Sequence record: NC_027364.1
Reading direction: 5' to 3' (one strand)
Length of the DNA: 64,000 nt
Shown here: positions 14,601-26,600 of the stretch, one piece after another
How the letters are laid out: each line of letters opens with the position of its first letter
How positions within the stretch are numbered: the first letter of the stretch is position 1
Made by a program: the position numbers and the translations under genes
Notes under the pieces: generated by a model
The model's input: the letters and a program-made list of their open reading frames with translations, nothing else
Databases searched by the model: none
What the model was told of the DNA's origin: nothing

Positions 14601-17600
14601 CTAAGATACTTTGTCAATACTTAATTATTGTAAATGCAGTGAATAGTGATAAAGTTTTTACGACCGTAAACCTGCAAATCAATATCAATGTAGTGCTTAT
14701 CAAGTACATCCTCGACGCTTAACGCGGTGTCGTGAATATCTTCGTAGAATTGAGGATCTACAATCTTGCTTAAGTCATCCGGCGTTAACTTATCGTTAAG
14801 CCATTGAACCGCCTGGATATCTGCTTCACGTTTCCAGTCTTCCAGGTTAGTAGTCAGTACTTGCTCGATTTCGTTAGCTGTCAGTAGAATCCGCATTTTT
14901 ATGTTTCCTTATCAGTAGTTGATGTAAGTATTATACTCGTTTACTTTCTATTGTCAATCTTTTTTTATCAGGGGAGTTTTTCGTATGTCTTACTCCTGGA
15001 CTACTTAACGGGGTTACTTGTTTTGTTCCCCGTCCTGATGTAAAACATTATACTTGATTCTAAGTACAATGCAAGTACTTTTTAAAAATAGTTTTACTTA
15101 CTCATATTAACAGGCTTGAACGGTGGCAATGTAAGATCATGCGGGGTTAAACTATCATGCTTTGCCCACATACCGGAATCCCTACGGAATAATACCTTAT
15201 TGTTTTTTATACGATAAAAGTTACCATTATCAGTGTTTTTGTACCATATCATTTTCATTTACTCCTGGTTATGTCGTTATTAAACATTATACGGGGTTAT
15301 AGATAGTTTTCAAGTATATTTCAGTACTAGCCACCAGCATATAATAGATACATTTATGCACCCTATGGGCTGATTTTTTTCTATGCGTATATAATAGCAA
15401 AGGGACTGACCGGAGTCAATCCCTTTTTTAATTCTTTTTAAACTTCTTTCGGGTTGCGATATGTGATAGCGTTCGGGTACATTTGTTTAATGTTATTCCA
15501 TGCCTGGTTAACATTGTAACCACTTGAGCGAATCAGTTGGTTACTACCGACACCTTGAAACACTACTTCGAATAAGAATTCTTTCATGCTTTCACCTCGC
15601 TATCTGCTTTACCTTTACGCCAGGACATTACTAATTGTTCGCGTTGCCATAAATCGAGTGATACAAAAAGTTTTGCGGTATCACTTTTAGGATACTCGCC
15701 AGTAGTACCTAACCGATAAAACAGATCTTTCAGTACTGATAATTCTACTTGAATCATTTTATTACTCCTGATTGATTTAATACTTCTACTATTGCATGAA
15801 TGATCATAAGTACAGCTAAAACAATAATCATCGGATTCATTTGCATAAGCTGTACTCCTTCTATTAATCTTTCAGCCAATGATCTTGAATGAATTTTTCA
15901 CAGAATCCCTGTTTCATGGATTCCAACAGGCGTTCGCGGTGAGCGTTTGCGAATTGCTCAGTACTATGCGTTACGCCAGGCTGATAACGTGATACCCCAT
16001 CCGGTCCGATGTATTGTACATCCCACGGTTTTTCGTTAGTATCAGACCATTTACGAACGATTAGTTGACCTTGCATTTTTCTTTCCTCTCAGTGGGGAGA
16101 ATCATTTCTCCCCTTCATGTAACTTATTATACAGTACTAGATTATCTTGTCAATAGTTTTTATTCACCTTGTTTGAATTTAGTTTTCTCCATTGATTCCA
16201 TGATTGCAACCAATACGCCGTGGATCTCGCTTAACGCGGAATCACTGAAAGCATTAATGAATAGTCGATCATTCTCGCGAATATTTTTAATGTACTTTTC
16301 AGCAGTAGTTGCGAATTCATTCAACGGTAGATCAAATGCTTTATCCCATGATGGATGGCGTAATTGTAACAGTACTGGATTATCACGATCACCAGGGGAA
16401 AACGTACCAGTGATGAAACATACGCCCGGAATACTTTCGAACTGGCAACGGACTTCCTTTGTGATAGTAGTATGAATGTACATTTATTGTTATCCTCTAT
16501 TAAATTAATATTACAGTTTATGAATCAATTCTTTATCTAAGCGATAGCGTACATTATTAATAGTAACGGCATTGTTTTTAATGCTACGCTGTACAGGTCC
16601 ACCAGCAATAACAAATGTTGCTTTATTACCCCGAACAATGATAGCACTTCCAGGATTACCGAAATCATCTTGTACTAAAATACTTGATAAGTTTTCCATT
16701 TTCATTTCCTCTTAGTAGGGGAAGATGTTTCCCCTTGATGTAAGTACTATAACACTACTGGATAGTACTGTCAATACTTTTTATCTCATAGATCTATGCC
16801 AACAATTACGCGGGGGACGTTTAAAAGTACTATCATGATCCTCCTGGCAAGTTATGCAGTACTTACATCCCTTAACGGCCTGGCGTCGTTTCTCAGGGAT
16901 TATATCGCCGCAGTCGAGGCAATGTATCAGTGATTCTATTTGTGCGTTAATTTGCTTTCTAGCGTGGTTAACGGCGGCCTGAATCACTGCGTTAATCTCG
17001 TCTTGTTCGGCCCCATCTTTCGCGAATCCTACAGCCATTATTTTAACCTCATTATAAAAATACTATAGTACTGTAATGCGACAATAATATTACTTGTTCT
17101 TACTTTTTCCAATCCACATGATACCACATATTCATCCCCATATGTGCGGAACGATACACCATGAAAATTTTTATACACTTGCACTACTAATCATAACCTT
17201 TCGTCTAACCAACTGCATAGAATTATACTACTTTACGCAAATTGATCAAGTATTGATCAGATCATTTTTTGATCAATATTATACAGTTACATTTGTGCAC
17301 CCTATGGGTTAGTGACGTTCTCGTCTTGATGTAAGTATTATGCCAGTACTTGATGATATTGTCAATAGTTTATTTTAATTTTTTTCTGTCATTGATTAAT
17401 GCTTTCAGTACTATACTAATGATTTGCAATGATTCATCAATGACTATAAAATTATTCTCTTTCATTAGATGATAGTTACCATTGATTGTATATTCTAAGG
17501 AGTACTGTTTACGTTTAATTTTTGATAATGTTTCTATTTGTTTTTGTACTGATTTCATGCTAATCATTGTTAAACGTCCTGTAACGCATTCTAACGAGAT

Positions 17601-20600
17601 AAACGGTTTAGTACTGGCATTGTATAGGGTAATGAATTAAAGCCCACCAGCGTTAACCAGTGGGCTATAATCTTACATCTTGCGGATAATCTTAACAGTA
17701 TCTTTCACCGATTTACCGTCTTGCTGGCATTGCTCGATCATTGCGTATTGTTCTGCTGTAAGATCCTCGCCAGTTTTTGCCAGTACTGCGTCGATGAATG
17801 AATCCAGTGCGATCATTTTGTTTCTCTCTTAGGTTAAGTTAACTACTGTTTATAAAACTTATTATACAGTACTATCAAACGTTGTCAATATCTTTAATAG
17901 TACTGGTAATATATTTTAGCGGTAATCGTCGTATGCTTTATTCACCTGGCGAATGTAACTTTCAAAGGCTTCGTCTACCGTTTCATACTCCCGAACATAA
18001 TCACCATAGGAAACTACATACATACCTTTTTGATCTTCAAACGACATGATGATAGAATCCAGGCCGATGATTTCAGTTTTTGCGATGATAGCCATTTTTA
18101 ATTCCTTAGTAGTGTAGTTGATAAAAGTTATTATGCCAGTACTATCAATCAGTGTCAATAGTACTGTGATAATATTTTTTAGTTAATAATAGTCAGTGTA
18201 AAATTGTAATCCCCTGCCTGGTATAGTACTTTATCGCCGAACGTTCCAACACGTTTCATATTGCAATAGATACCCATAACACTTTTTACATCTTTGATAT
18301 TCCGAACGCCAGTAATATCCTTGTTTAAATGATCGTGATCAGAAAATAAAACTTGTTTTGCATTTTTCAGTACAGTGCAGATATTAGCCATTTTGTTTTC
18401 TCTCTGTTAGTGGGGAGAATCATTTCTCCCCTTCATGTAACTTATTATACAGTACTATAATCTATTGTCAAACTATTTTTTTATATTATTCGAAATCTTC
18501 TGGACCGGACTGATAATCATCTTCACCGTATGCACTTTCTAACTTCTCGCCAGTGTGATCATCAGTTAGTGAATCATCCTCATAATTCACGTCTACGCCT
18601 ACAATGTAAAACTGGCTATCGTCTGGATCATTGAAATTAATTTTCTGAATGTTTACAATAACTGTATTGATGCCCAGGACACAGCCATCAGCCGTTACAA
18701 AGTACTGATAGTTTTCACAACCGCCTGAATTGAAACCGTAATTGATTTCGGCCCGACCATCATTTAAACGCAGTGCCTGGGCGATGATTTCGTTTTCAAA
18801 GTTAGATTGAGCAATTGAGATAGTCATGATTCGTTTCCTTATTACTAGGGGAAACCGTTTCCCCTTTCGATGTAAAACATTATACGCTTATTGAGATAGT
18901 TTGCAAGTACTTTTTATCAAATACTTTAAAATAGTTTTCAGTACTCAAACATTATACAATAGATACACTCCTGCACCCTGTGGGCTAGTGAGCTATCTCT
19001 CAATGATTATATAATAACAAAATGGCTGACCGAAGTCAACCACTTTTTTCATTTATTTTTTAGCTTTAAGTACTGCGGCCTTTCGTGTCATGCCTTGCTT
19101 GATGTATTCCTGTACTTTCGCTTTACGTGCTTTAGCTTTATCTGCTTTAGTTTTAGGAGTACTGTAAACTATACCGTTAGGATTCATTTAAATCACCATA
19201 AAGAATAGATAGGTTACTAACAACGCCGCGATCAATGCACCGACCAGGGCCGAACTGTAATAAGCTAAGGATCTCATTTTTTAGCCTGAAAATAATGTTT
19301 AATTTGTGCGGCGGTCAGTGCACAATTACGCAGGAAGTTTTCTGTATAACTGCGGCGAGTATTAAAAGAGAATTGACCTTTACCGTTACCGATAGTTACA
19401 TCCATCCGAGCGTTGTATTGTTTCATTTTGTATCTCCTGTTATCGGGGAGAATCATTTCTCCCCTTCATGTAAAACATTATACAGTACTAAAAACTAATT
19501 GCAAGTATTATTTTAAACTTTGTGCGACTAATTTCGCACGGTCAATCATATACTGCCATTTTTGGATCTCTTCTGGCAGAAAACGATATTCACCAATAAC
19601 AATAGTGATACACTTTTCAGCTTGGTCAATGTATGTAGTATCAATCTCGACTTGAACGGGTACACGTTCGCCGTATTCAGTCCCTGGGATAATGCAATCA
19701 TTATCATAAGTTACAGTAGTAGTAGTGTCTTTGATTAAAATTGTTTCCATTATACTTTCCTCGTTAGGTGTAAGGGGAACGTTTTCCCCTTCATGTAAAA
19801 CATTATACAGTACTGAAAACTAATTGCAAGTACTTTCCGAAAGTAAATGCTCATACGCTGCATTAACTACATTTTCAATAACCGACTGTACAGAAAGATC
19901 CCCCACGTCCTGGCTATAGTAGAAATTGCTTACAGTGGTGTCATCGTATGCAAATACTTTACCAGGTACTGCATCAATCACATACATATTAACCTTTAAG
20001 ATGTCGATCTTATCCTGTACAGTAAGCATATTAATTAACCTTTTAAGTACTGGCTTAAGTAGTCTTTTTGATCTTCGGTGATTGCAGTCATCTTCCCTAG
20101 TACTGGATTGATGATATAATCCCCTGTAACGTCCTGTAACGCATTCTCAGGCGGTTTAACGGCTGGGGTAGCCATAGCCATTGCCTGGACTTGTTCGACG
20201 CTGTAACGCTCATAAAGGCGGCATTCTTCCGGTGTTAACATAGCATCAGTACGCTTCATCGGTTTAATGATGCTTTCGATCTCATTCAGTACTTGATTAA
20301 CGTTCATGGTATAATCCCCAATATAAGCGGCCTAAATCGACCGCTAACGATGTTTTGATTAATAGGTGTAAGGTTGACGCTCAAACAATGATTGTACGCT
20401 GTACGCCCCGCTAATGGGCTTCGCTGGCAAATCAATTTTATATTGTTCACGCTTAAAGATAATAAAACGGCAATTGTTTTTAACATCAAAATTGATTGAA
20501 CGTTCCAGGAGTTTTCCATCGTGCACAAATACAAGATAACCGCTTGGTACTTGTTTTGTAGAACTGGTTGCAACCATAGACCGACGAACATGTGTACCTG

Positions 20601-23600
20601 CATCGATTAAAGTACTGATATTTTTCATTTTACTATCCTCTTAAGTTGATTTAATTTCTTTCCCCTATGCAGACACTGTATCAAAGTATCTGCATAAAGT
20701 AAAGCTAATTAAAGATCTTTTTTACGTTTTACATCCTGTACAGTACAATGCAACGGGATAGACAAATCATTACACAAACGAGTAAGGGAGGTTTCAACAG
20801 TATCAAGCCCGTCTACTGATTCCTTTAAGAGATCAAACGCCGTTTGTTGATATGCATCTTCATAGCCATAAGTAAATGATTCAACCGCCAGATCATTCAA
20901 ACCGTTATCCAGTTCAACGCTTACATGACAAGAATGATAAGTATTGCCATATGAATCAGTCCAACGTTTACCGTCAACATTGATTGCATGGATTGCAGCC
21001 AGGGAAACGGTATTGATGATAGTTTTAGCCATTTTAGTATTCCTTAAATTAATATGTGTCGTCTTGATAAAATCTATTATGCCAGTACTATCAAACTATG
21101 TCAATAGTACTGTGATAATATTTTTACTTACTTTCTTTCGCTGCTTTATATGTTGCCACTGCCATAACCACATCAGCACGAACAAAGTTTTTAACCGTGT
21201 CACTGTAATAATTGATCGCATCATCTATATCTGCGAACGTCCGATACATACCGCACCAAGATACTTTATAACCTTCTTTCACTTCTGCCAGTTTAACGAT
21301 AGTCTTGTTAACTTTGATTTTAGTAATGATAGCCATTTTAGTTTCCTCATTATCAGGGAGAACCATTTCTCCCCTTGATGTAATGTATTATACTTTATTC
21401 GATTTACTTTGCAAGTACTTTTTTTAATTTAATTCATCCAGGCAAAGGATACGCTCAACGCCCAAATCAGTTAAACTAATCGACGGCACTTGATAGGTTT
21501 CAATGTATGCTACACTTGCCCACTGACCGAACTCATTAACGGCCCAGGTATTCATTGCATTTTGCAATTCCGCACCTGCCTTGTTAGTAATGACTGCAAC
21601 TACTTGTTCGTTGCCAGTAGTACCAGATACGCGAGTAATGATAATAGCCATTGTTTTGATTCCTTTGATTTGGAAGGAGAACCGTTTCCCCCTCTCGATG
21701 TAAAACATTATACGCTAATCTCTTAATCGTGCAAGTACTTTTTATTACTTTTTGCAAAATACTTTAAACGCTCTCAATCGCATTCTAACGACCTTAACGC
21801 CACCAGCTAGGGCGATGTATCAGATAATCAGTTTAATGCGTTAGAATCGATTCTAGGCGGTGCTGGTGGACTGGAATACTACAGACACAAAAAAGCCCAC
21901 TGTTTAAGGTGGGCTAGTGATTCAGTACTTTAATTGTTATGCTTCAACTTTGCGATGAGCTTCGATCCATTCCTCGCGAGTCATACCGCTTTCTTTGATA
22001 GCGTCCAGTACTACCGCAATGCAGTTACCGCGTACAGGAATCATATGTTCTTCCCCGTTATCAAGTACTACAGTAACACGTTCTTGAATCCATTTTTTAG
22101 GTTTAGATTCTGGCTTATCTTCACCATACTTAACCGCCAGGGCTTTATGTGCCATTTCTACAACTACTTCCAGATCCAATCCAGCCACCGCCGCCTGGAT
22201 ACTTTCGATTGTTGCTTGCAGTTCGGCTTCACGGGCTTTTTTCTGTTCTTCCAGTTCTGCTACCTTTTTGGCTTGCAGTTCTTTAGCTTCACTGTACGCA
22301 ATGTTAAAATTGTTGCGTACTGCTTTCATGGTATCGTTATCCAGGTCAGCCAACAATTCAGCAGCAATAACAGTATCGTTTGAAATCAGTGCTTTCAGGA
22401 ATGATTTTACATTAGCCATTTTATAAATCCTCAATTAAAGTTTAGTTTACGTTTATTAGTGTATCAAAGTTTTATCGACGTGTCCAGTTTTTCGTTCGAC
22501 TTACTGGCGGTCTACTTAGTGCTCCCCGTCTTGATGTAATACATTCTACGCCTTTTTGTGGTAATGTCAACTACTATTTTAAAACTATTTTTAAAGTATG
22601 CAGTACTACGATAATACAAAAACAAAAAAGCCCACTGTTTAAGGTGGGCTAGTGATTCAGTACTATATTATAAACAGTTAATTACTCCGGTGTGCGTTAC
22701 TTTCTCAGTATCCATAACCGTGACCGATCCACGCTTAGTACTTACATCGTAATAAATTGTCGTGCTACCTTTTTCGTCTTCTTCATGGAACGGGCCGCTT
22801 TTAAATGCTTCTGGCTGGATCTCTAAATCCTTTAAAACAATCTCGCCAGTACTTTCATCTGTCATCGCAACAGTGCACTGAATGAATTTTTCACTACTTA
22901 CATCTAACGACGCATTAACAGCGAAAGAGGAAACAGATAAAGCCAGGGCGATGATTGCAATTTTCATTTGATTATCCTTAGTTACCAGGGGGAACCGCTC
23001 CCCCGTGCGATGTAAAATATTGTACAGTACTAAAAACTAATTGCAAGTACTTTATGATTTTTTATAAAACATTTCGGCAGTAATATTTTTACCCGTTGGT
23101 TGTACTTTATCCAGAATTTTTTGATGCCCTGGCCGTCCAAATGAATATGATCCGTAAACCGTAAACCAGTAGTTACCCTCAGTGTTTACATGTACAGCAC
23201 AATAGGGAACGCCCCGCGATTCATCACCAATAAAGTGTGATACCGTTCCCGTTACATTAGCAGACGTTGATTTGATTTGTTCAAGCATTTTCTTATTCCT
23301 TAGTTACCAGGGGGAACCGCTCCCCCTATGCAAAACATTATACGCGTTTAAAAACTAATAGCAAGTATTTTAATAAAAAGTATTTGAAAAATAATTGTTG
23401 ACAACTGCATCCAGTACTGGCATAATTACTACATCAAGACGAAACAGTCACTAACCCACCGGGTGCCGAGATCCGTCTATTAAATGATTCAGTACTTAAC
23501 AATAAAGGGGATCAATCGATCCCCTATGTATTACTTAGTAAGGTATAAACAGAAGTCACCTTTATTTGCTACGCCGCCAGTGTAACGCGATGAATAGTTA

Positions 23601-26600
23601 GAAACGTCCTGGACTTCTGCTATTACCAGTGTATCATCATTCAATTCGTCGCAGAAGCAAACGGCTGGATCTTTTACGCCGATCTTGTCGGCATGTTCCC
23701 GCATAGATTTAACCAGTGCTTCCAGTTGAGAAAGAGTAGTGATATTAGCCATTGTATTTTCCTCATTACCAGGGAGAACCATTTCTCCCCTCTATGTAAA
23801 CTATTATACAGTACTGAAAACTAATTGCAAGTACTTTTAATTAAATTCCATAAAATCATTCTCAACGTGCACAACAATTTGATTGTTTTTAAAGTCCGCA
23901 GCGAACTCGATGCAATCATAAACCGCTTTTTGTGTTACAATGCTATGAGTACCAATCGGATTAATAGGGGATTGAATTGTTTCAATCTCGTTCCCTTGCT
24001 CATTAACAATTAAAATATTAAACATCGCTGTTACTCCTGGGTAGTGTTAACTCGATATAAAGTATTATACGCCTTTATTGCTTAGTGTCCAGTACTTTTT
24101 AAAACATATTCATAAACACTACGCACATCATTGATCATCGCCTGGCGGTTAGCAGGTAACGCACCAGGATCGCCACTATCCCAGGCATTGATAAAACTCC
24201 CCAAATCATGAAAGATTTTATTCTGTAAGCCGATTAACTGCAATTCTTTTTCTTCAAGCTCTTTGATACGGTCAATTAAAAGACTCATTAGATAATCCTC
24301 AGTACTTAATTGTAAGATCCGCAACGGTTACAATAGTGCCCGTCTTCCTCGTCATCGTCAACGAATTGACCGACGAAATTATCTACTTTCTCTTTGAGAT
24401 TCTGATAATTGTTTTCAACTTCCTTTAGACGTTCCTGGTAGTATTCCAGGGCTTGCACATACGCCGCCTCAGCCGTTTTCGCTCTTAAGGCTAAATTCAT
24501 GCCACGCGTTTCATCGTACATCCAAAAGCCATCGGTGCACTCACTGATTGACAATGATTTGGTTAACACTTTATAGTCAATTACTTTGCTCATTAGATAA
24601 TCCTCAGTAAAGGCGGGAACCACACCCGCCATTGATTCAGTACTGAATGTTACATTCCAACCATTGCAGCACGGATCGCCGTAGTGCTATACTTGAATCC
24701 GTCCGGTGTTGTAGTAGTACCGTTGGCTTTTAATCTGCGGTACATACATTGGGCCGCAATATCTTTAGTTTTACATTGTGCGATGCAACTTTGAGCAAGC
24801 CGATATAATGACTCACCGTTATTAATCCACAATGAAACATTCCAATGAGTTTTGTTTTTGTGCCCGTTGTAAGTTTTAGTAGTAGCCATTTTTAAATCCT
24901 CGTTTAATTGAGCGGGAGAACCATTCCCCCGCCTCGATATAAAGTATTATACGCTTTTAAACTTAGTTTGCAAGTACTTTTTAAATTAATATGCGATTGA
25001 TTCTACTACGTCATCAATAACATTGAATTGATACTCGTTACCCTCGATCAGTGCCGTGATGTTCTCAGTAGTGAATTGATCCTCATATGCATTCTCTAAA
25101 TCACGGTACAACTTGCGGGACAATTCACGAATAGTATCAGTGAGTAGTTCCTCAAGCTCATTAACTAACGTTTCTTGTTTTGCGGTTAAATCAGTGTAAG
25201 CCGATTCAATGTACCCGCTTACAGTATTCTCATGCGAGTAGTGGGAGTGCGAACGCTTTACACTCATCGCCAAATCATCTTCATTCAGCAAGTGACGGAT
25301 TGAGCGATACTTAGTTAATGCTCTTACCTTGCGTAAAAACTTCACTGCGTCAACGTGGTCAGTACTGATTGATGCACCGTCACCCTGGGACCAAAAACCA
25401 CTGAATTGTATTTCAGCTTCATTAATGCCATATTCCGGTAGTACTGTTTCTTTATAGTATTCAATTTCACTTTCAGAAAAATAATTGTCGTTTGAGTTTT
25501 TTTCACGTTCCCGAACCAGTTCGATAGCTGACGTTTGTTGTTCTGCGTTCAATTCAGAAAAATCCATAACGAAAGTAGTAGTAGTGATAGTTTTCATTTT
25601 GTAACCCTCATTCAGTAGTTGATGTAAGTATTATACGCTTTTAAAAACATTTGTCAAACTATTTTATCAGGGGAGTTTTTCGTGTGCCTTACTCCTGGGC
25701 TACTTAACGGGAAGTTACTTATTTCGTTCCCCGTCCTGATGTAAAACATTATACGCCTTTAAACATAGTTTGCAAGTACTTTTTAAAAATAGTTTTCAGT
25801 ACTGAATATTAAAAAAGTATTGACAGCATTATCAAGTACTGGCATAATATACCACATGACAACAGCTAACCCACCGGGTGCACAATTGTAACTATACTAA
25901 ACTAATTTTTCTATAGATACACTCCCGCACCCTATGGGCTACGGCTTATCTGCCAATGAATACATTATGCCAGTACTGACAAAATAAGTCAATACCGGCA
26001 ATTGTAAAGATTTGTAAACTACTTATACTGCAATCGCGTCCAGGCTATAATAATAATAAGTGCCGTATTGGTGTACTTTATTACCTTTTATTTCAGTACT
26101 GAATGAATCCGAACGATTTGCATATGATGTTAATTTAAAGTACTTTGATTTGCTGATACGTTGCCATACACCACAGATCCGCTGTAAGTAAGTAGTTTTA
26201 TTCGTGGTAGTATCTTTTACGGTTTTAACTTCAGTCATATACATATTAGTCATTTTTATTACTCCAGGTTATAGGCGGGAAGAGTTCCCGCTCTCGATGT
26301 AAAACATTATACGCCTTTAAACATAGTTTGCAAGTACTTTTTATTCAAGTACTGCAATCTTTTTAGTACGGTACACGGTCACGCGGTTGCCCTTTCGGTC
26401 GAGCTTTATTTCTACCACTCGACGCGATACACTATCGGGACTTTTTAAGGCCGCTAACCAGTACTGTAATGATCTGGCTGTACTACGCTTTACAATGGCC
26501 CAACGTTTACCACGTTCCGATTGTACGCCCATATCTTTAAACGTTGCCCCGTCCTGGCGTGCGGCGATCCGAGCTTGTTCACGCGTCGCAAAATACTTAA

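Follow-up and report, generated by a model that had tools for sequence, protein, structure and literature searches.

A diverged H-NS-like protein with a Gly-Asn loop, encoded between predicted twin terminators in Asteriusvirus jumbo phages

Incoming DNA that is rich in AT is silenced by H-NS. The coliphage antagonists of H-NS known so far (T7 gp5.5, T4 Arn and MotB) are small inhibitors, and they are unrelated to it in both sequence and fold. H-NS homologues are themselves carried by mobile elements: those described include Sfh and Acr2 of plasmids, Hfp and H-NST of genomic islands, Ler, and the H-NS of phage EPV1 (PMC7074111, PMC3097231). H-NS follows a three-part plan, with an N-terminal oligomerisation domain bearing two dimerisation sites, an unstructured linker and, at the C terminus, a domain that binds DNA (PMC6936261). 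Here we describe a gene from a 64,000-nucleotide stretch of sequence record NC_027364.1 (hereafter the window), which lies on the minus strand at 21937-22419 (stop codon included) and encodes a protein of 160 amino acids, as given by its open reading frame (ORF) and translation. An original prediction, made from the sequence of the window, had called this protein H-NS-like, with a coiled-coil N-domain and an H-NS-like C-domain. The part of the window around the gene (21400-23100) matches Escherichia phage PBECO4 (KC295538, 145400-147100) at 100%; PBECO4 is an Asteriusvirus jumbo phage of 348 kb with E. coli as its host and a DNA of 35% G+C. The gene starts with an ATG at 22419-22417, preceded by a GAGGA Shine-Dalgarno sequence (22428-22432), and ends in a TAA codon. 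It is annotated as a hypothetical protein in PBECO4 and belongs to PHROG 27871, function unknown; a literature search turned up no publication that treats the family in Asteriusvirus or RaK2-like phages, and the records of Klebsiella phage Muenster and of K64-1 already name the homologue a DNA-binding protein.

A full hidden Markov model search against 1.8 billion representatives recovered only 15 relatives of the protein, down to 25% identity, and a second word search added three more. The family is distributed across Asteriusvirus, Alcyoneusvirus and their relatives, and every match of a structure search of BFVD was likewise a further phage protein of this family. For the Pfam tests and the analysis of the DNA-reading loop we used a family alignment of 23 members, reaching down to 25% identity.

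Pairwise comparison with E. coli H-NS using BLASTP yielded a colinear alignment of 66 residues over the linker and C-domain at 27% identity (pairwise E-value 0.001), which pairs V-L-D-N-G-E-E with V-D-E-N-G-E-T and keeps the subsequent loop and helix in register. Profile-profile comparison of the family with hhalign gave 49.5% against 15 enterobacterial H-NS proteins and 85.6% (E-value 5.5e-6, score 41.8) against 29 diverse H-NS proteins gathered by PF00816 from 151 Pseudomonadota genomes. Of the controls, 30 column shuffles reached 15.8 at best and the reversed family 19.4 (1.5%). When the domains were compared separately, each matched its H-NS counterpart, at 69.8% over 54 columns for the N-domain and 62.7% for the C-domain, versus 7% and 0.3% for the cross-domain comparisons; remote homology was thus found in both domains and in the right order. 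The BLASTP and hhalign registers are identical. Moreover, one relative (P0026) gives a weak match to the Pfam model Histone_HNS_N (E-value 2e-4; 21.5 bits against a cut-off of 24.5), and among named clusters of the ESM Atlas those of H-NS come closest, with a score of 0.77 (below 0.8) that is a lead only. Independently of our comparisons, the Muenster homologue, which is 38% identical, carries the annotation 'putative DNA-binding protein, HHpred hit to NP_417155.1 97.2%', and NP_417155.1 is StpA. On this sequence evidence the gene product is a remote, strongly diverged and phage-specific member of the H-NS family, and the H-NS likeness claimed by the original prediction is borne out in both domains by BLASTP, by hhalign with its controls, by the structural model described below and by the Muenster annotation.

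AlphaFold2 run on a diverse alignment produced a model with a predicted local distance difference test score (pLDDT) of 84.7; an earlier run on a shallow alignment had reached a pLDDT of 62, and a fold search from that model was useless. In the model, the N-terminal oligomerisation-type domain (residues 1-99; 22123-22419, minus strand) consists of helices at residues 2-12, 16-23, 28-77 and 83-97, the third of which, at 50 residues, agrees with the coiled-coil N-domain that had been predicted. Within it, Gly80 is invariant and sits in a G-L-D-L-E turn, which hhalign pairs with D-G-I-D-P-N-E of H-NS. There follows a linker (residues 100-113; 22081-22122, minus strand), rich in lysine mixed with acidic residues, which is modelled as an unstructured, low-confidence block with a pLDDT of 61. 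The C-terminal H-NS-type domain (residues 114-160; 21940-22080, minus strand) is modelled with strands at 114-118 and 124-128 and helices at 135-144 and 148-155. With the constant offset of 18 residues in the alignment, these elements fall at what we take to be the positions of their counterparts in the H-NS C-domain. The modelled protein therefore shows the H-NS architecture (PMC6936261), with its two dimerisation sites inferred from the alignment only. In comparison with H-NS and StpA (PF22470 plus PF00816), the phage protein shares the helical oligomerisation domain with a Gly-containing site-2 helix-turn-helix, the Lys-containing linker, the beta-beta-alpha-alpha domain and a colinear profile, as well as a loop of equal length (the Arg114 position comes 10 residues after the conserved Gly). 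It differs from them in falling below the Pfam thresholds, in its identity of 13-27%, in the change of Q-G-R to R-G-N and of Trp109 to Ile, in its acidic C-domain and less basic linker, and in being encoded by a virulent jumbo phage.

For the DNA-reading loop, both BLASTP and hhalign place MIPVRGN opposite TWTGQGR, which confirms the register of the replacement noted in the original prediction: the codons CGC GGT AAC (22024-22032, minus strand) encode Arg130-Gly131-Asn132 and stand opposite Gln112-Gly113-Arg114 of H-NS (Q112>R130, G113>G131, R114>N132). All 23 family members, the most distant of them at 25% identity, share Gly131-Asn132 without exception, and the residue before it varies (R, S, T, K, N or H). 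The loop thus reads R-G-N instead of the AT-hook-like Q/R-G-R, its third residue being Asn in every member. A Gly-Asn pair at the tip of the loop is a feature of the 'AT-pincer' proteins MvaT and MvaU of Pseudomonas (PF22055). Loop 2 of MvaT is K-G-G-N-H, with a functional G99-N100 in which N100 occupies the position of H-NS R114; the Gly-Asn reads the minor groove, and the N100A mutation weakens DNA binding and abolishes repression (PMC4466236). The phage family has this MvaT-type Gly-Asn, a likeness in one motif only, along with a conserved Arg with which the first strand opens (Arg114 in the phage protein, Arg80 in MvaT; a putative equivalence). In contrast, an hhalign comparison of the family with 29 MvaT-family proteins gave 4.3%, the MvaT loop is two residues shorter, and the lysine network of MvaT is largely missing from the phage protein. 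Judged by this low profile match and by a loop that keeps the H-NS length, the phage family is not an MvaT. Since Gly-Asn is invariant and N100 is a working residue in MvaT, the change in the loop would not be a simple loss of function; together with the purifying selection on the C-domain, the match to G99-N100 argues for a functional DNA-binding domain that reads DNA differently, and the loop looks re-specified rather than dead. As a side observation, several bacterial PF00816 proteins (loci L102, L103, L110, L115 and L116) have G-K-G-P in place of G-x-G-R, indicating that the Arg114 position is naturally variable in the cellular H-NS family too.

The gene is maintained across its relatives. 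None of the 37 related records lacks or truncates it, while only 16 of 42 records cover 80% of a comparable stretch in its neighbourhood, i.e., the surroundings are variable. Its ratio of nonsynonymous to synonymous divergence (dN/dS) is 0.13-0.20 among four Asteriusviruses, and the gene is under purifying selection. A metagenomic phage contig (L158) holds two paralogous copies of the H-NS-like gene (698-1291 and 2047-2640), which are 61% identical and lie about 750 nucleotides (nt) apart; a leader hairpin of the type described below and then a small ORF precede the first of them.

The gene lies, as had been noted originally, between two perfect direct repeats of 43 nt (21887-21929 and 22622-22664), which are 735 nt apart and form the exact part of a 57-nt pair with 93% identity; the 41-nt core of the repeat has two copies in the window and none in 100 shuffled sequences. 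Each copy contains a hairpin found by a terminator scan, with a 7-bp stem (AGCCCAC/GTGGGCT) holding five G-C pairs, an 8-nt loop and a following run of six T. On the minus strand, the downstream copy (hairpin 21894-21915) follows the H-NS-like gene, of which it is the predicted terminator, at a distance of 7 nt from the stop codon, and the upstream copy (hairpin 22629-22650) begins 3 nt after the stop codon of the gene at 22668-22967, of which it is the predicted terminator in turn. The annotation of phage G17 has a terminator at each of the equivalent sites. In phAPEC6, Turkey5, CMSTMSU and G001, the stem is kept at both sites, the loops differ and the two copies are not identical; in G001 (348 kb), the stem sequence occurs at these two sites only. 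In Muenster, the gene is again flanked by terminators, and these are unrelated to each other. In an Rfam search over 20500-24500, the terminators alone gave a match, a weak one to the Trp leader. A G+C-rich hairpin with a U run placed after a stop codon, in which the stem is kept and the loop is free, is what is expected of an intrinsic terminator, and by these features the repeats are predicted to be rho-independent, paralogous twin terminators of two neighbouring transcripts. The H-NS-like gene would consequently form a monocistronic unit.

The original prediction had taken the repeats to bound an excisable or amplifiable module, and a cassette that is lost or multiplied by recombination between the copies would indeed be suggested by two perfect direct repeats 735 nt apart, by the restriction of the stem to these two sites in a 348-kb relative and by the reshuffling of gene cassettes in this region between phages. 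We regard this as very improbable, and the claim did not hold up: each copy, a hairpin with its T run, comes immediately behind a stop codon, the two copies have unlike loops in other Asteriusviruses, the flanking terminators of Muenster are unrelated to each other, and the gene is kept in 37 of 37 records. Four public sequencing runs, consisting of metatranscriptome (RNA-library) contigs, contain no joint of 21929 to 22664 (the 735-nt deletion), although contigs may hide rare forms; their de Bruijn contigs merely break at the repeats. The excision or amplification cassette was accordingly rejected, no natural variant deleted or amplified between the repeats having been seen in the 37 records or the four runs and the repeats being non-identical in most relatives. 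As a separate observation, one contig of run X16 fuses two promoter cassettes by joining 21721 to 22523, so that 801 nt with the entire H-NS-like gene are missing from it; this joint is weak (a 33-nt side with 90% likeness), might reflect either a variant strain or faulty assembly where promoter sequences are repeated, and is not relied on here.

Upstream of the gene, a promoter scan identified a candidate sigma-70-type promoter, TTGACA-16-TAGAAT (22543-22570, minus strand), which agrees with the consensus at 11 of 12 positions and whose two hexamers are invariant in five Asteriusviruses. Counted from this best sigma-70-like promoter, the 5' leader would be about 117 nt long (22420-22536, minus strand) and would include the Shine-Dalgarno sequence. 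Within it, a block of 43 nt (22479-22521) is invariant in five phages, the synonymous divergence of the gene itself ranging from 0.24 to 0.88. This block holds a small hairpin (22484-22507, minus strand) consisting of CCAG, a 16-nt loop UAAG-N4-ACGAAAAA and CUGG. Three of its four base pairs change on both sides and 100% of the cells are paired, which amounts to covariation. The long structured leader that had been predicted is thus retained in its length and in this one covarying hairpin and is not upheld for the leader as a whole, whose folding energy is ordinary when compared with shuffled sequence (z = 0.16). The hairpin is also found upstream of homologues in Muenster, SE_PL and the metagenomic contigs L088, L090 and L158, and where the phage is more distant it is separated from the H-NS-like gene by a second strong promoter. 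That the hairpin accompanies the gene across protein identities of 27-38% suggests a regulatory link, possibly autoregulation. The leader element occurs three times in the window, each time on the minus strand (14978-14992, 22489-22503 and 25677-25691); the other two copies precede a 91-residue gene (14621-14896) and a 203-residue gene (24986-25597), and at both of these a second promoter stands between the element and the gene. The early promoters at 20500-24000 of the window share a common cassette, in which AGTACT abuts the -35 hexamer (AGTACTTGCAA) and is followed by a 16-nt spacer and TATAAT, with a G-rich stem-loop after the TATAAT and before the ribosome-binding site; the promoter of the H-NS-like gene is the variant nearest to consensus (TTGACA) and has no G-rich stem-loop.

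The word AGTACT, often as CAGTACTG, is the top hexamer of the window relative to base composition, with 269 occurrences against 22 expected, and is absent from the 4-8 kb bin. It adjoins the -35 and precedes the -10 of early promoters in the window, in Muenster and SE_PL, and in contigs L090 and L158, and it stands 12 nt before each of the twin terminator hairpins. Of 13 contigs with a gene for a family member, 12 are enriched 8- to 25-fold in AGTACT, among them contigs whose members are only 27-32% identical; besides the window, the survey took in L001, L088, L089, L090, L121, L122, L124, L126, L158 and L159. The exception is contig L157 (encoding P0033), with one occurrence observed and one expected. 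This co-occurrence of the word and the family is a correlation among probably related phages and not evidence of binding.

We propose that the gene encodes an autonomous nucleoid-associated protein of the H-NS family, which would bind AT-rich, TpA-containing DNA with a specificity of its own and would compete with or remodel host H-NS; with the family assignment counted in, we incline to this reading, if not strongly. Host RNA polymerase would transcribe the gene early and as its own unit from the near-consensus sigma-70 promoter, which would lie in the long terminal-repeat region, the unit comprising promoter, conserved leader with its small hairpin, gene and terminator, and being insulated on both sides by the same terminator. 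The protein would self-associate via its four-helix N-domain, and its C-domain would bind the AT-rich, TpA-containing minor groove with a specificity unlike that of host H-NS. It may then occupy or remodel H-NS-type nucleoprotein on the 35% G+C phage genome, in the manner of Ler or plasmid Sfh, with the result that early phage promoters would stay active. Several results weigh against this proposal. The protein of the window has no Pfam match (PF22470, PF00816) at E-values up to 10, no H-NS Pfam model reaches its gathering cut-off in any of the 23 family members, and PF00816 matches nothing in the nearest whole phage record, G001; apart from the weak Histone_HNS_N match, Pfam searches on ten relatives and on the 23 members gave sub-threshold noise. 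Searches of PDB sequences with the single protein and two family profiles returned no H-NS chain, tblastn with E. coli H-NS against 50,697 phage records did not recover the family, and the C-domain alone had no usable match in the ESM Atlas. A VIA-align superposition on residues 1-83 of H-NS (3nr7) covers all 81 residues with a Z of 4.9, which is a tie level also reached by many unrelated long helices. Foldseek with the whole model against the PDB found no H-NS, and together with VIA-align listed no H-NS C-domain, residues outside 23-99 being barely probed. Identity to the H-NS N-domain is only 13-19%, making mixed oligomers with host H-NS uncertain. The C-domain of the Asteriusvirus protein has a net charge of -4 and residues 96-113 (an 18-residue stretch over the linker) one of +2, compared with 0 and +5 for E. 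coli H-NS and about +3 and +5 for MvaT. Positive linker residues matter for DNA binding by H-NS (PMC6936261), and with an acidic C-domain and a weakly basic linker the affinity for DNA may be low. Finally, starts, ends and strand are not readable from the metatranscriptome contigs, so that transcription of the gene is not shown by them. One could hence argue that the protein is no relative of H-NS at all, being a generic coiled-coil with a small alpha/beta tail and a profile similarity due to chance, as the Pfam cut-offs, the PDB sequence and Foldseek searches and the Atlas scores below 0.8 would allow. We consider this improbable, in that two separate domains match in order and in register with far lower scores in the controls, the BLASTP register equals that of hhalign, and the annotators of Muenster arrived at an HHpred result of their own.

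If the family assignment is accepted, the protein could act otherwise than we propose. It could be a dominant-negative anti-silencer, as suggested for it originally and comparable to H-NST or T7 gp5.5: the N-domain would join host H-NS or StpA, a crippled C-domain could not hold DNA, and the mixed filaments would collapse. The Asn at the Arg114 position and the charges given above (with +2 against +5 in a linker whose positive residues matter; PMC6936261) fit this idea, as does the best-conserved N-terminal stretch, which matches the H-NS site-2 turn and has the invariant Gly80. However, a poison needs no C-domain, and H-NST does without one (PMC7074111), whereas here the C-domain is the most conserved part of the protein and its Gly-Asn is invariant to 25% identity; moreover, Asn at this position makes a working minor-groove contact in MvaT (PMC4466236), and the N-domain has only the low identity to that of H-NS noted above. 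We thus see this as a possible but minority explanation, and a purely DNA-blind H-NS poison as less likely than a re-specified binder. Silencing of AT-rich host loci (CRISPR-Cas, defence islands) has been hypothesised for phage-encoded H-NS, specifically that of EPV1 (PMC3097231, PMC7074111), and early, promoter-driven expression would fit such a role; there is no evidence on targets, the divergence from host H-NS is far greater than that of the EPV1 copy from its host's, and the 35% G+C genome of a virulent phage would itself be the main binding substrate, for which reasons we give this idea little credence. A different possibility is that this phage-only branch of H-NS supplies the missing reader of AGTACT: a histone-like phage chromatin protein whose R-G-N loop would read the TpA-centred palindrome and mark or coat the phage chromosome and its early promoters, with the word built into early promoters and terminators and the gene perhaps regulating itself via the leader hairpin. 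The abundance of the word, its position next to the -35 and ahead of the -10 in the early promoters of the window and of relatives, and its enrichment in nearly all contigs that carry the family speak for it, and MvaT-type readout favours TpA steps and tolerates G/C (PMC4466236, PMC6936261). On the other hand, the carriers are probably all related jumbo phages, so that the co-occurrence may reflect shared ancestry, the P0033 contig has the family without the enrichment, H-NS-type domains are shape readers of low sequence specificity, and nothing links the variable residue before Gly-Asn to the word. We consider this reading rather unlikely; even so, it makes the protein the first concrete, though weak, candidate for the factor that reads AGTACT in these phages.

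The H-NS-like gene belongs to a long series of small minus-strand genes, each preceded by a sigma-70-like promoter cassette. In Muenster and vB_Ec-M-J, the homologue lies within the annotated long direct terminal repeat, and G17 has two copies per record; its place inside the terminal repeat in relatives with determined ends points to a typical early region. The upstream neighbour, listed as an ORF of 99 amino acids (22668-22967, minus strand) with the upstream repeat as its predicted transcript end, has a signal-peptide-like N-terminal segment (MKIAIIALALSVSSFAVNA), and no Pfam family was found for it. In phAPEC6, an additional gene of 231 nt stands between this neighbour and the H-NS-like gene. 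On the other side, no ORF lies between the predicted terminator of the H-NS-like gene and the promoter that comes next (21735-21706), and this gap holds an inverted repeat of about 70 nt (CCACCAGC ... GCTGGTGG; 21800-21869); in G17, a 153-nt ORF is annotated in the equivalent gap.

Phage- and plasmid-borne H-NS homologues are already known, and the Asteriusvirus family is best classed as a diverged variant added to them. Like the others, it is an H-NS-family gene that travels on a mobile AT-rich genome and presumably disturbs or supports silencing by the host; the others are near to host H-NS with Q/RGR kept or lack one domain, and it forms a deep branch confined to phages, in which both domains are retained and the loop is new. 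With T7 gp5.5, T4 Arn and MotB it would share an early phage function directed against H-NS-coated AT-rich DNA; no likeness to these proteins was found, and no search was aimed at one. Thus, a 348-kb virulent coliphage and its relatives keep a two-domain H-NS-family protein of their own in place of a small inhibitor, and the gene for it is strongly conserved inside a very variable early region. The locus also illustrates that perfect direct repeats flanking a phage gene can be mere twin terminators. The Gly-Asn loop chemistry has so far been known from the MvaT branch. Provided that the phage protein binds DNA, it would offer a natural experiment in the re-tuning of the H-NS fold to another sequence preference, and would be a candidate organiser of a phage chromosome that lacks a protective shell.

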